Below the pieces are notes generated by a model that made no database searches, was not told where the DNA came from, and worked only from the letters and a program-made list of their open reading frames with translations. Source: Octopus sinensis (Eukaryota). From it: DNA of 64,000 nt. The stretch spans positions 24,168 to 88,167 of the forward strand of contig NW_021833037.1 of assembly GCF_006345805.1 (NCBI RefSeq), written 5' to 3'. Shown here in pieces: positions 1,269 to 56,400 of this stretch; within the stretch, counting starts at the first letter, position 1; each line of letters starts with the position of its first letter. The position numbers and the translations under genes were made by a program.

Positions 1269-1496
1269 CTCTGTTTAATTCAGTGTAAATGTTGCCTGTC
1301 CCAAGCTTCAAAACAATATCAGAATGCTTTTTATTTGACAAATAGCATCTTCGATTACCGACTTCGAAGTCAGTCGACTGACAATATGAGTGTGTTTCAC
1401 AATGATATAAACACGTCGTATAATTAATATGATTGTATCCAATAACATTGTTACTAGGGAGATAAACCCTGTTAACAATATCCAAGGGGCATTTTC
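1269..1496 (-). CDS. PAN/Apple-domain exon B' (internal, phase 1-1, 228 nt)
   Basis: Acceptor ttttctcttttcag|, donor |gtaagt; KCPLDIVNRVYLPSNNVIGYNHINYTTCLYHCETHSYCQSTDFEVGNRRCYLSNKKHSDIVLKLGTGNIYTELNR has the PAN core C-x3-C-x5-C-x-S...C-x-L; paralog at 40672-40902. Confidence 0.8.
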
Positions 1497-1649
1497 CTGA
1501 AAAGAGAAAATGGATAAATGAATTTTTTTCTTCTTTTCATTTTCGTAAACATGAGGGGAGACGCGGTTATAGTGAAGTGTTTTATTATTTCGGATTAATG
1601 AAAATTTAGTACTATATTAATTACTTTCGGTTAATGAAAAATATTTAGC

Positions 1650-2675
1650 GAAGAAGAAGAAGAAGAAAAAGGAAAAGGAGGAGGGGAGGGGAAGGGAGGA
1701 TGAGGAGGAGAAGGAGGAGAAAAAGAAGAAGAAGAAAAAGGAGGAGGAGGAGGGGAGAGGTAGAGAAGGAAGTGGAGAAGGAGGAGAAGTAGGAACAGGA
1801 GGAGGAGGATGAGGAGGACGAGGTGGAGGAGGAAGAGCAGGAGGAAGAGCAGGAGGAGGAGCAGGAGGAGGAGAAGTAGAGAACGAGGAGAAGTAGAAGA
1901 AGAAGGAGAAGAAAAGGAAGAAGAAGAAGAAGAAGAAGAAGAAGAAGAAGGAGAAAAAGAAGAAAAAAGGAAAAAAAGAAGAAGAAAAGGAAGAAGAAGA
2001 AGAAGAAGAAGAAGAAAAGGCAGAAGAAGAAAAGGAAGAAGCAGAAGAAAAAAGAAGAAAAGGAAGAAGAAGAAGAAAAGGAAGAAGAAGAAGAAGAAGA
2101 AGAAGAAGAAAAGGAAGAAGAAGACGAAGAAGAAAAATAAGAAGAAGAAGAAAAGAAGAAGAGAAGGAAGAAGAAAAGGAAGAAGAAGAAAAGGAAGAAG
2201 AAGAAGAAGAAGAGGAAGAGAAAAGGCCAAGAAGAAAGAGGAGGAAGAAATGGAAGAAGAAGAAGTAGAAGAAAAAGAAGAATAGAAGAATGGAAGAAGA
2301 GAAGAATAAGAAAAGGAATAAGAAAGAATAAGAAAAGAAGTAGAATAGGAAGAATGGAATAATAAGAAGAAGAAGAATAAGAAGAAGAAGAAATGGAAAA
2401 GAAGAAGAAATAAGAAGAAGAGAAGAATAAGAAAAGGAAGAAGAAGTAGAGGTAGAAAAGGAAGAAGAAGTATAAAGTAGAAAAGGAAGAAGAAGTATAG
2501 AGTAAAAAGGAAGAAGAAATAGAAGTAAAAAGGAAAAGAGAAGAAGAAGAAGAAAGTAAGTAAAGAAGAAGAAGAAGAAAAAATAAGAAGAAAGGAAGAA
2601 GAGGAAGAAGAAGAATAAGAAGAAGAGAAAAGAAGAAGAAAAAGAAGAAGAAGAAGAAGAAGAGAAGAAAGAAGA
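1650..2675. repeat. ~1 kb imperfect (GAA)n/(GGA)n polypurine tract
   Basis: Almost pure A/G on the + strand; the source of the long low-complexity ORFs in the track. Confidence 0.95.
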
Positions 2676-2683
2676 CAGGAAGG

Positions 2684-52710: not shown

Positions 52711-53134
52711 TGTTCACGAAAGAGTATTTTCGAAGACTATGAAAGTTTATCCTTGCAGGGATAAACTCAAAAACGGATAATTTTCTTTTCTTATTTCGAT
52801 TGAAAGGTATATGGGTTTCGAACCAAACTGATGCGATAGACTGAGATGCTGCAATATATGGAGCGACAGAACACAAGAGTTGTATCAGGAAATATTGATG
52901 GTTGTTAACATACAGAATGGGACGACGTGGCGATTACACAATACCAAACATTTTGCAAGTGAACCTAATTCAATGAAACTTCAATATTCACACACACGCA
53001 CAAGAATATTTGACTGCAAAATAAATGAATACACTTTCGAAATATTAAGTAAGATTTATGCGGAGAATATCACTGCTGAACAGAGCGGTTCTAAAGATAT
53101 GTTTAACAGATCCCGACCCAAAAACTGACAACAG

Positions 53135-53350
53135 CACACACACACACACACACACACACACACACACACACACATTCTCTCTCTCTCTTTCTCTTTCTCC
53201 TTGTCATTCTCTCTCTTTCGTCTCCTCTCTCTCTCACTCTCACTCTCTCTCTTCTCTCTCTGTCTCTCTCTCTCTCTCTGTCTCTGTCTCTCTGTCTCTC
53301 TCTGTCTCTGTCTCTCTCTCTCTCTCTCTCTCTCTCTCTCTCTCTCTCGC
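53135..53350. repeat. (CA)n-(CT)n/(CTGT)n microsatellite
   Basis: Direct reading of the sequence. Confidence 0.95.
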
Positions 53351-53491
53351 TTTCTCTCATTGAATCTGACTTGTACACGCATACATGAAGACATTCTGTT
53401 TACTTTGGAGTTAGCAATGGAGGCAACGAACCCAGCTTACAAACGAAAAATATTGTATATGAAGCGTTGGATTAGCAAAGTGTACGGCGTA

Positions 53492-56400
53492 GAACTACAA
53501 AATAATAAATACAACGTGATTGATTTTCATCTGAAAAACATAAAGCAAGCGAGAGAAAAGAGATGGAAGGAAGAAAGAAAGAAAGAAAGATAGAAAGAAA
53601 GAAAGAAAGAAGAAAGAAAGAAAAAAGAAAGGTGATCAGAATTGTGAACAATTTTGATTTGATCCAGGTTGAGGATTTTCATTCGTTTATGGATGAGTTA
53701 CCCAATTTGGTTCCAAATTTCTTCATTTTATACGTGAAAAAAATTAAATCTGTGTTTCACACATTCAGTTAATCTTCTGTAATTATTTTACGCAATTTAA
53801 GTAAAACTCGTATCATATCCTCATATAGTGTAAGATATCTGTTCGTCTCCCTCACAGACTAATGTCATCTACACACAATTTAGATATTACACCCCAGACA
53901 TGCATTATTTTCATCATCAAAGATATTGAGAATATTCACTGACAGTCACGTGACAAAAACCTAAACACACAACCTTTTGACAAAACGTTGCCTTTTCTCT
54001 TTTCTCCTTGGTAATCTTGTGTCTCAATCCCAAATCTATGCTAAGCGCATCAATCAAACCTTTATTAGAACTTTCACTCTCTGAAACGAAAACTCTACAA
54101 ACAATTTTTTATCCACAGACACCATTCGACGACATTGACCAGAGAAATCGTAGAGACTTTTCAAATGCCGACAGTATTGTCTCTCTTTCGATTGAAACAT
54201 AGAATACAAGTCAAGGAATGAAATAAACCCAGAAGATTCAAATTTGTTTACCGTCTCTATACTTGGTCGGCACAGTTCTTCTCAACTGATAAAAATAGGC
54301 ATTATTTTCCCCTGTTAGAATTTTCTCTGTTGAGTCATTTTCGTATAAAATACATCTTGGACTTATCGTTCTGCTCACGAAGGATTTACATGCAGAAGTT
54401 TCAAAACACCTCTTCGAACAGTCGAAGGCATCCACATCAAGTGTCATCAATGTTTTAGCATCTTTCAGATCACAGTGTTGTACTTTTATAAAATACGTCA
54501 GATATTCAACTGTAACAAAAACCAGGCAAATTAAACAACCCAAATAGGAAGACGTAAATAAAATATTGTGAAAATATATAATATAAAGAAAGAGAATATT
54601 AAATGTTTGACGATCAACATTGGTATGTTTACTAGGAAGAAGTGATAAAGTTGTTACTACCATAGTGTAGGTACAAAGCATCTTGGAATATATTATCTGT
54701 TTAATAAATATGAGTTTTTAAAGTTGTTTAATTCTCATATTTAAATGATTCGTATGTTATGTTCTATAATGTTCAACGGTTGTGCATTGTAAAGTTTGCC
54801 CCAGTATCAGCACTTTGTCAAATTTAACAAAATGCTTAGAAACTGACGAAACACTGACGAAATGGAAATTATGTTCAGAATTGAATTCGTCATTATTCGG
54901 CGGTTTTATCTTGAACTTAGAATTTTAAATTTTCTTTTCAACTAATTTACTATGAGAAGGAAAATATTTTCCTATACTGAACTTATAAATTACAATTTTG
55001 CGCTGTGATTTTTATAATGTTTATAGATAAAGGTCTATATATTGATATAAATCTACTCACGTCCATTTCCAAATGTCAATGAGATGTAGAAGAGAACTGC
55101 AACGAAAATTTATTTTGTAAAATATTTTATTCCATGTCCACGTTTAACATTAATTTACAAACATTAAAGACGAAAAGATTAAGAAAGAGAAGTGTTATAT
55201 GCATAATTCGATAATAAATACGACGATGACCACCACCACATCACCATAAAAATATAATGCGAGAGTTGACCACATTCTTTCTGCTGATCCATTCCTTGTC
55301 AAACCCAATTATGTTCTTAGAAAGGAATCTATGTCCACTGGATCATGTACCATCATTTGGAGACAAGAACGGTTAGGAAGGGATAAAACATCAAAGACGA
55401 TACATAATAACCACCTGACCACAATCGGGGAAATGACAGACAAAGATATCAAAAAGAAATCGTACAAGGATAAATTTATCAAAGAATGAAACAATATTTG
55501 TACTCAGATTGATATCGCAATTACTTTTTGCAAAAAAATTTCCTGGTGAGAGATGTGGAAACTGTCAATATTCACGATCCATGAATTTAAAATGAACAAG
55601 AATCAGGTATGAATTTGAAAACGATATGACTGAAGTACAAGATAAAAGCCATATCAACGATATTCTCAGTTCAAAAGATGATCCAGTTAAACCCGGCCCA
55701 CATGGTACGCAAGACACTTTCAATTTAGCCGTACATCTCAAATAGTTCCCTATATAATCACCGACCAATAAAATATTTACATTTTACACACACACATACT
55801 GTAAAGAATCACAGCGAAACCATGTAACACAACACATTCTCCAGACATTAACTGATCCAATAAAAAAGACAGCATATATTAATCTATATTCAAGAAAATA
55901 AAATCTGAGTAAAAACCTCCTAAATGAAATGCATCGAAAGATATATTTACTCATGCATAAATAAGGTTACCGTCTAATGATACTGACTTGTGATTCAGTT
56001 TTTCGAGGTTGCACCATGGTTATACCGATTAAATGTGGGATAAATATAATAATAAGAAGGATGAAATTCAAGGATGGAATTTATAAATAGTTAATACACC
56101 GCTACGCGCGTTTCCACAAATCACACGATTTAAACATCGGACTCCGTATCCTTGAGATTGGTACAGTATAGTCCGTATTATCCATGGGCATCCGATTGAT
56201 CATCATCATTCATTCATTTAATCAGGCGATACTACATTAGTGGATGAATTCCAGAGGAACTCTGACTAAATTGGCCTTTATACTGGCAAGACAGGATGAA
56301 CATACTAGAATTATTGTTGTTATTGTTGTTATTATTATTATTGAGTGAGAGGGCAGTGCACGCAATCAAAGTGACACTGGAGTAAAATATACAAAGCCCA

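Follow-up and report, generated by a model that had tools for sequence, protein, structure and literature searches.

Two head-to-tail genes with PAN/Apple modules on phase-1 exons in an unplaced scaffold of Octopus sinensis

Exon structure of the two genes

The analysed window, a stretch of 64,000 nucleotides (bases 24168-88167 of the unplaced Octopus sinensis scaffold VCDQ01003282.1; assembly GCA_006345805.1, scaffold length 88,167 bp), carries on its minus strand two genes built of PAN/Apple exons, here called gene 1 and gene 2; the scaffold matched window positions 64000-28143 with 100% identity. Very probably, these are paralogues in head-to-tail order from a family restricted to octopods, in which six phase-1 coding exons encode a secreted triple-PAN binder; gene 1 is complete, and gene 2 is truncated by the left edge of the window. 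Five minus-strand exons had been proposed in the initial annotation, A, B and C in gene 1 and A' and B' in gene 2, and these were recovered at the same coordinates, with polypyrimidine-AG acceptors at all five and GTAAG or GTAAA donors in all except C. The phase 1-1 that had been assigned to all of them holds for A, B, A' and B', whereas C starts in phase 1 and is terminal, ending in TGA with no donor. The junction peptides KYRD-G-KCP and ISR-E-KEIN were reproduced. The proposed set of three exons per gene was incomplete, as six coding exons were observed instead, two leader exons and an 87-nt linker exon having been overlooked; these were located by mapping related Octopus proteins back onto the window. 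The coding exons of gene 1 are as follows.

56556..56586, minus strand: coding exon 1, with the ATG and the first 10 signal-peptide codons (MLLRKCLQVI) and a phase-1 GTATGT donor
55061..55096, minus strand: coding exon 2, 36 nt, the remaining signal peptide (F)LFYISLTFGNG, with AG acceptor and GTGAGT donor, phase 1-1
54252..54509, minus strand: exon 3 (exon A), 258 nt, first PAN domain, with the conserved four-cysteine core and one non-conserved cysteine
40672..40902, minus strand: exon 4 (exon B), 231 nt, second PAN domain, the most variable of the three
39316..39402, minus strand: exon 5 (linker), 87 nt, phase 1-1, ELWNNFSQSYTLKDISSVGCAFGSYYFVN, with one family-conserved cysteine
38143..38333, minus strand: exon 6 (exon C), 191 nt, third PAN domain, ending ...KKLI-TGA

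Gene 1 (56586-38143) contains five introns, all of phase 1 and all GT-AG, and its six exons splice into a coding sequence of 834 nt for 277 amino acids, which is residue for residue the RefSeq protein XP_036355256.1 (uncharacterized protein LOC118761468, Octopus sinensis). A TATAAA element lies at 56657, 71 nt 5' of the ATG, and an AATAAA signal at 38027, 116 nt 3' of the exon C stop. The gene had been described as hidden, which is true of a prokaryote-style track of open reading frames (ORFs), but gene 1 is already annotated in RefSeq, so that the proposal amounts to a correct but ordinary gene call. The proposed A-B-C splice scheme is in frame, although the RefSeq product inserts the 87-nt exon between B and C, using the junctions 40672>39402 and 39316>38333 and not 40672>38333. 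The direct junction 40672>38333 also keeps the frame and is used in the paralogue models P0006 and P0012, the linker exon being left out of some paralogue models, and it may represent an exon-skipping isoform; the linker-skipped isoform of 248 amino acids had no exact match in the protein collection.

Gene 2 repeats the same plan towards the left edge, with the following coding exons within the window.

21697..21727, minus strand: coding exon 1, with the ATG, MLQRNCLQVI and a GTATGT donor
9083..9118, minus strand: coding exon 2, 36 nt, with the same sequence as exon 2 of gene 1
8274..8531, minus strand: exon 3 (A'), 258 nt, 96.5% nucleotide identity to A
1269..1496, minus strand: exon 4 (B'), 228 nt, 44% amino-acid and 70% nucleotide identity to B, frame open and cysteine framework kept

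Gene 2 runs beyond the left edge of the window, and its C' exon was observed at scaffold 16643-16449 on the minus strand, about 7.5 kb left of the window, preceded by an AG acceptor and open in frame up to the family ending ...KKLI-TGA. A family-profile search of window positions 1-1268 did not detect the linker exon of gene 2, which must then be located in scaffold bases 16725-24167 (7.4 kb). Five of the six coding exons of gene 2 (two leaders, A', B' and C') were therefore seen, all of them open, with canonical splice sites and a conserved stop. Because gene 2 possesses its own ATG and leader exons as well as its own C' exon with a stop, it is a separate gene of the gene 1 plan and its head-to-tail paralogue. 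The earlier proposal of two tandem multi-PAN paralogues, the second continuing past the left edge, is thus upheld by separate starts and leaders (56586/55096 in gene 1 and 21727/9118 in gene 2) and by the stop-bearing C' outside the window.

PAN/Apple modules and predicted properties of the product

Each of the five exons carries one PAN domain with the core C-x3-C-x5-C...C-x-L, as had been predicted, and both the profile and the structure comparisons agree with this assignment. Against a gathering cut-off of 21.4 bits for Pfam PAN_1 (PF00024), the scores were 28.0 for A, 39.7 for B, 23.8 for C, 23.7 for A' and 25.5 for B', all exceeding the cut-off, and the joined A-B-C sequence reached 69.7 bits (E = 2e-19) in three stretches. 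The core C-x3-C-x5-C...C is present in five of the five exons and is conserved in the family, in line with the four to six cysteines by which PAN domains are recognised (PMC9249922). When the family profile was run against six-frame pieces of the window, the known exons were recovered with E values of 7e-53 to 5e-24, and the same search revealed no PAN exons besides A, B, the linker, C, A' and B', the other pieces not falling below E of about 0.9.

The AlphaFold2 model of the gene 1 product (the model from a 19-sequence input was used, and an 8-sequence model with a predicted local distance difference test score, pLDDT, of 42 was set aside) showed a mean pLDDT of 69.4, with 78-89 for domain B. 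The fold predicted for each module, strands, one helix and strands again, fits the PAN fold of a helix on a curved antiparallel sheet. The Foldseek matches of the model were mainly PAN/Apple proteins, including the apple discs of factor XI and prekallikrein, SML-2, MIC4, the plasminogen PAN domain and the N domain of HGF, with single-domain root-mean-square deviations (rmsd) of 2.1-3.0 A; apple-domain proteins made up 13 of the 15 matches at E <= 0.001, and the 50 matches listed also included thyroglobulin (E = 0.012) and PfAMA1 (E = 0.07-0.1). A sequence search of the PDB weakly returned the same PAN/Apple families.

Differential degrees of likeness were observed towards the known PAN/Apple systems. 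In the predicted model, the best whole-model structural match is to the apples of factor XI and plasma prekallikrein (Foldseek E ~5e-6, ~298 aligned columns), which likewise set PAN/Apple modules in a row, and B with the linker shares with them a set of six conserved cysteines. However, these blood proteins have four modules and a protease, whereas the octopus protein has three modules and no protease domain; its A and C retain a four-cysteine core only, and the match has 13-16% identity and template modelling scores of 0.25-0.27, the inter-domain arrangement either differing or not being predicted. The best sequence matches among solved structures are Sarcocystis muris SML-2 and Toxoplasma gondii MIC4, both to B (2yil, E = 5e-4; 4a5v, E = 0.017), and both are small, secreted proteins built solely of tandem apple domains, SML-2 having been crystallised with a galactose analogue; they are nevertheless non-orthologous proteins of parasite-host adhesion with ~15-17% identity. 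The N-terminal PAN domains of plasminogen and HGF superpose on predicted single modules with rmsd of 2.5-3.0 A across 77-84 residues, and the collagen-binding leech antiplatelet protein (LAPP) is itself a small, secreted PAN protein (PMC7191736); in these proteins, unlike the octopus product, the PAN module is single, either joined to kringle or protease domains or standing alone. The nearest relatives from outside the family are the giant Octopus PAN and Sushi proteins LOC118764742 (2,643 amino acids, E = 4e-66) and LOC106869390 (1,730 amino acids, E = 3e-53), which carry 14-21 PAN_1 modules (21 PAN_1 stretches with Sushi repeats in LOC118764742) and indicate that long PAN chains do exist in Octopus genomes; they differ in lying at other loci, in bearing Sushi repeats and in being ten times longer, whereas the genes of the window end after three modules.

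The mature gene 1 protein has ~255 residues (~29 kDa), 16 cysteines and two N-x-S/T sequons. Exons 1 and 2 would encode a cleavable signal peptide, as judged from the features of MLLRKCLQVIFLFYISLTFGNG, in which a basic n-region is followed by a hydrophobic core of 13 residues and a c-region of small residues; among the paralogues, this segment shows 80% conservation. Exons 3, 4 and 6 each supply one PAN/Apple module (A, B and C), and the product would be a secreted, disulfide-rich and N-glycosylatable protein of ~255 residues. The cysteine counts per exon are 5 in A, 5 in A', 5 in B', 6 in B and 4 in C, so the five that had been reported for A, A' and B' were counted correctly. Four cysteines of A, five of B, one of the linker exon and four of C are conserved in the family, including members that are only ~25% identical, while the fifth cysteine of A and A' and the sixth of B are non-conserved; the linker cysteine and the first cysteine of B are likewise retained in the ~25% identical members. 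The odd number of cysteines had been taken as a sign of further exons, which proved right for B, where the missed linker exon carries the conserved cysteine; in A and A', the fifth cysteine is simply non-conserved. Apple/PAN domains pair C2 with C5 and C3 with C4, and Apple domains add a C1-C6 pair. By the parity (4+5+1+4) and the conservation of the family cysteines, Cys111 (the first cysteine of B, in KCP) most likely pairs with the linker Cys205, and the 29-residue segment of exon 5 would thereby provide, with its sole conserved cysteine, the closure of B as a six-cysteine Apple domain.

PAN/Apple modules are known for protein-protein or protein-carbohydrate binding (PMC9249922, PMC7191736). 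By analogy with this superfamily, the product would act as a soluble extracellular glycan or protein binder, and the gene 1 protein is most likely a secreted, lectin-like extracellular binder. Its conserved A and C modules would then serve as a scaffold, with the fast-evolving B module as the specificity element.

Octopod relatives, array history and transposon setting

Protein searches retrieved twelve Octopus proteins of ~250-280 amino acids with the plan signal peptide, PAN A, PAN B, short linker, PAN C and stop. When 1.84 billion representatives were searched exhaustively with the profile, 8 matches fell below 1e-30 and 36 below 1e-10, and a repeated word-indexed protein search with alignment gained two fragments and no more. 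All of the named close relatives that were looked up belong to Octopus or Argonauta hians, i.e., octopods, and on these matches the family appears to be octopod-restricted. LOC118761606, LOC118761180, LOC118766713, LOC106868906, the O. vulgaris 'Apple domain-containing protein' and A. hians Ahia01_000849900 share the gene 1 architecture and exon structure at 26-99% identity, although all annotated members are labelled uncharacterized and gene 2 has no counterpart model. Across species, O. bimaculoides LOC106868906 is 79% identical to the gene 1 product over its full length and has the same six coding exons within 10.9 kb.

The initial annotation had suggested the adjacent scaffold and related genomes as places to look for more exons, and these supplied the C' exon, a third copy and further units in O. 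bimaculoides and O. vulgaris. The third copy, LOC118761469 (partial), lies at VCDQ01003282.1:544-6724 on the plus strand, convergent with gene 2, and its 5' exons are off the scaffold end. In O. vulgaris, the 61-kb region OX597830.1:44766234-44827331 contains two complete A-B-L-C units (L, linker) head to tail (9935-20370 and 30364-49657), and on an O. sinensis chromosome a 45-kb region shows the L-C end of one unit and, after it, a complete A-B-L-C unit. The family probably grew through tandem duplication. Near-identical copies are also present on other unplaced scaffolds (LOC118761475, LOC118761543 and LOC118761516), which suggests that some of these scaffolds are alternative haplotypes.

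The public gene models of the family are of uneven quality. P0002, P0003, P0005, P0006 and P0007 are truncated, frame-shifted or fused. The O. vulgaris model CAI9735246.1 (298 amino acids) joins exons of two adjacent A-B-L-C genes, skipping the first B and truncating C and A, and is probably an annotation artefact. LOC118761180, a RefSeq model on a near-identical scaffold, uses an internal donor in exon B (40715), places C out of frame and adds an exon equivalent to window 37130-36984 on the minus strand; this reflects either a modelling error or a transcript that is aberrant or alternative. The Logan contig of the family protein P0023 is genomic, not a transcript.

Differential conservation was observed among the modules. 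The mean pairwise identity of eight family members is 80% in the signal, 72% in A, 66% in the linker, 66.5% in C and 46.5% in B. The ratio of nonsynonymous to synonymous substitution (dN/dS), from simple Nei-Gojobori counts on gene 1, gene 2, gene 3 and the O. bimaculoides orthologue, with ~75 codons for B, is 0.6-1.55 for B (1.2 for B' versus B and 1.55 for B' versus O. bimaculoides), 0.41 for A in the gene-versus-ortholog comparisons and 0.3-0.6 for C in most pairs. Throughout, B keeps its frame, its five framework cysteines and 9-11 invariant positions, in paralogues down to ~25% identity and across Octopus and Argonauta.

Self-comparison of the window revealed that the two genes are unequally related along their length, with 95.8% identity between 7535-9972 and 53492-55960, 93% between 20298-20693 and 55965-56343, 81% between 21607-22161 and 56467-57017, and only 74% between the B regions. 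Of the 258 nucleotides of A and A', 9 differ, in 7 codons, 6 of which change the amino acid, and the introns flanking A and A' are 96.5-98.4% identical, whereas exons B and B' are 69.7% identical, compared with ~80% for their flanking intron. Since A and A' with their flanks are near-identical while the B exons have diverged beyond their own flanking intron, the sequence comparison indicates that the 5' parts of genes 1 and 2 share a recent history, by conversion or partial duplication, and that the B exons are old and evolve rapidly. Exon 2, exon A and the flanks have probably been homogenised between the two copies by recent gene conversion or duplication over a tract of ~3 kb. Intron 1 measures 1,459 bp in gene 1, against 12,578 bp in gene 2.

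The window is AT-rich (G+C ~37%) and clearly eukaryotic, with abundant microsatellites and reverse-transcriptase (RT) fragments; an Rfam scan of the whole window gave zero matches, and Pfam assigned only RT and zf-RVT domains of long interspersed nuclear elements (LINEs) to 6 of 20 other long ORFs, the remainder having no match. The description of the setting as transposon DNA is fair in a loose sense, LINE RT segments being found in the spacer and in intron 3 of gene 1, and the introns of both genes are inflated by LINE insertions. The larger inserted features are listed below.

41235..48463, plus strand: LINE-type RT segments, which take up a large part of gene 1 intron 3 (13.3 kb)
26442..29783, minus strand: LINE copy with an uninterrupted RT ORF of 892 amino acids, in the 16.4-kb spacer that separates the two genes
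9972..20298, no strand assigned: ~10.3-kb block in gene 2 intron 1, missing from gene 1, with RT fragments and AT/TATA microsatellites

Two LINE-type copies, 26442-29783 (minus strand) and 45119-48463 (plus strand), are inverted and 97% identical across 3.3 kb. The 892-residue ORF of the spacer copy (26987-29665) carries RVT_1 and zf-RVT domains, and from its uninterrupted frame this copy may be a recently active element, while the ORF of the copy in intron 3 of gene 1 is broken into 563 and 271 amino acids. In the same intron, a 1.3-kb tandem duplication (41913-43243 and 43272-44603, 95.7% identical) adjoins a partial RT ORF, and a third copy of this segment, 96% identical, is present in the intergenic spacer at 24204-24939. 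Intron 3 of gene 2 contains an imperfect (AGA)n tract of ~264 units (1889-2675), which yields spurious minus-strand ORFs of 350 amino acids, and cross-matching AT/TATA/ATGT microsatellites were observed at 9972-10494, 19480-19744, 21942-22170, 32373-32652 and 57517-57708, among others.

Alternative explanations and biological meaning

Several observations weigh against the reading of the locus as two paralogous genes for secreted triple-PAN binders. The RefSeq XP_ models are computational predictions, and the protein collection searched contains no model for gene 2; with its linker exon in 7.4 kb outside the sequence read, gene 2 might be a pseudogene. The AlphaFold2 model is only moderately confident, with pLDDT of 52-57 in the linker, and the linker cysteine sits 45 residues past the fifth cysteine of B, whereas the corresponding gap in the factor XI apples is ~27 residues. 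A dN/dS of B near 1 fits relaxed constraint and diversifying selection equally, the data being too few to separate them. The copy number of the family is uncertain, since the unplaced scaffolds that carry several of its members may be alternative haplotypes, and a literature search on octopus or cephalopod PAN/apple proteins and the family LOC identifiers found no paper on the family.

The alternative that survives best, possible though rather unlikely, is that gene 2 represents a decaying duplicate, either a pseudogene or untranscribed, and gene 1 alone is functional. It would explain the lack of a protein model, although C' lies in a locus with called genes listed, and the B' sequence, which protein searches found in no database protein, as well as the ~10.3-kb insertion in intron 1, a TATA-like element that reads CATAAA and not TATAAA, the replacement in B' of two residues that are invariant elsewhere in the family (P146 to S, Y153 to F), and the B' dN/dS of 1.2 versus B and 1.55 versus O. 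bimaculoides. However, a decaying copy is not what is expected from five exons that are all open, have canonical splice sites and retain the conserved stop and the complete set of framework cysteines, nor from A' and its flanks being 96-98% identical to gene 1; in either case gene 2 appears to be without a model and may be a missed gene or a pseudogene.

Turning to function, the product could instead be a structural part of the extracellular matrix, mucus or egg coat and not a recognition molecule, the variability of B reflecting relaxed constraint; this is doubtful, though PAN domains are present in matrix proteins such as the C. elegans luminal matrix proteins of PMC4970718, and neutrality predicts the B dN/dS near 1. 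The frame of B, its five framework cysteines and its 9-11 invariant positions are nevertheless kept to ~25% identity, which is unexpected if the module were unconstrained, and B outpaces its own flanking intron in divergence. An extension of the binder reading, which we regard as unlikely and hold at a speculative level, is a diversified secreted recognition system, in which a conserved leader, A and C are combined with a hypervariable B under diversifying selection in tandem arrays, and gene 2 would be a distinct specificity variant and not a pseudogene.

The initial annotation had also offered one long PAN-only chain spliced from all exons (A-B-C-A'-B' and onwards), and this is rejected for the locus as very improbable. 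The internal exons are all phase 1-1 and stay in frame in any order, giant PAN proteins are encoded elsewhere in Octopus (LOC118764742), and CAI9735246.1 of O. vulgaris joins exons from two adjacent units; but exon C is closed by an in-frame TGA and lacks a donor, this stop recurs in O. bimaculoides as well as in genes 2 and 3 and is followed 116 nt on by a poly(A) signal, A' is preceded by its own ATG and signal exons in a promoter-proximal region 81-93% identical to that of gene 1, the RefSeq product ends at C, and the fused O. vulgaris model truncates exons and looks artefactual. The notion that the exons are chance ORFs or transposon-derived fragments and not a host gene, to which their position amid LINE fragments and microsatellites might point, has a negligible probability and was rejected on the PAN_1 and family-profile matches, the exact RefSeq identity and the exon structure conserved in three Octopus species.

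The two-paralogue locus therefore belongs to an annotated yet uncharacterized lineage-specific family, of which gene 1 is already in RefSeq as an ordinary eukaryotic gene call, and what is gained beyond the existing annotation is a second, intact-looking paralogue, gene 2, for which a protein model is lacking. Many of the public models are truncated, shifted in frame or fused across neighbouring copies, so that the size and structure of the family are poorly represented. The locus is a textbook example of one domain per symmetric phase-1 exon with retrotransposon-inflated introns. The confinement to octopods, the conserved leader and the fast middle domain would make the family a reasonable candidate for a recognition or secretory role specific to the lineage, should expression data agree, and the diversified recognition system, if true, would be akin in its logic to the expanded lectin-like immune or gamete-recognition families of invertebrates, undescribed in cephalopods.

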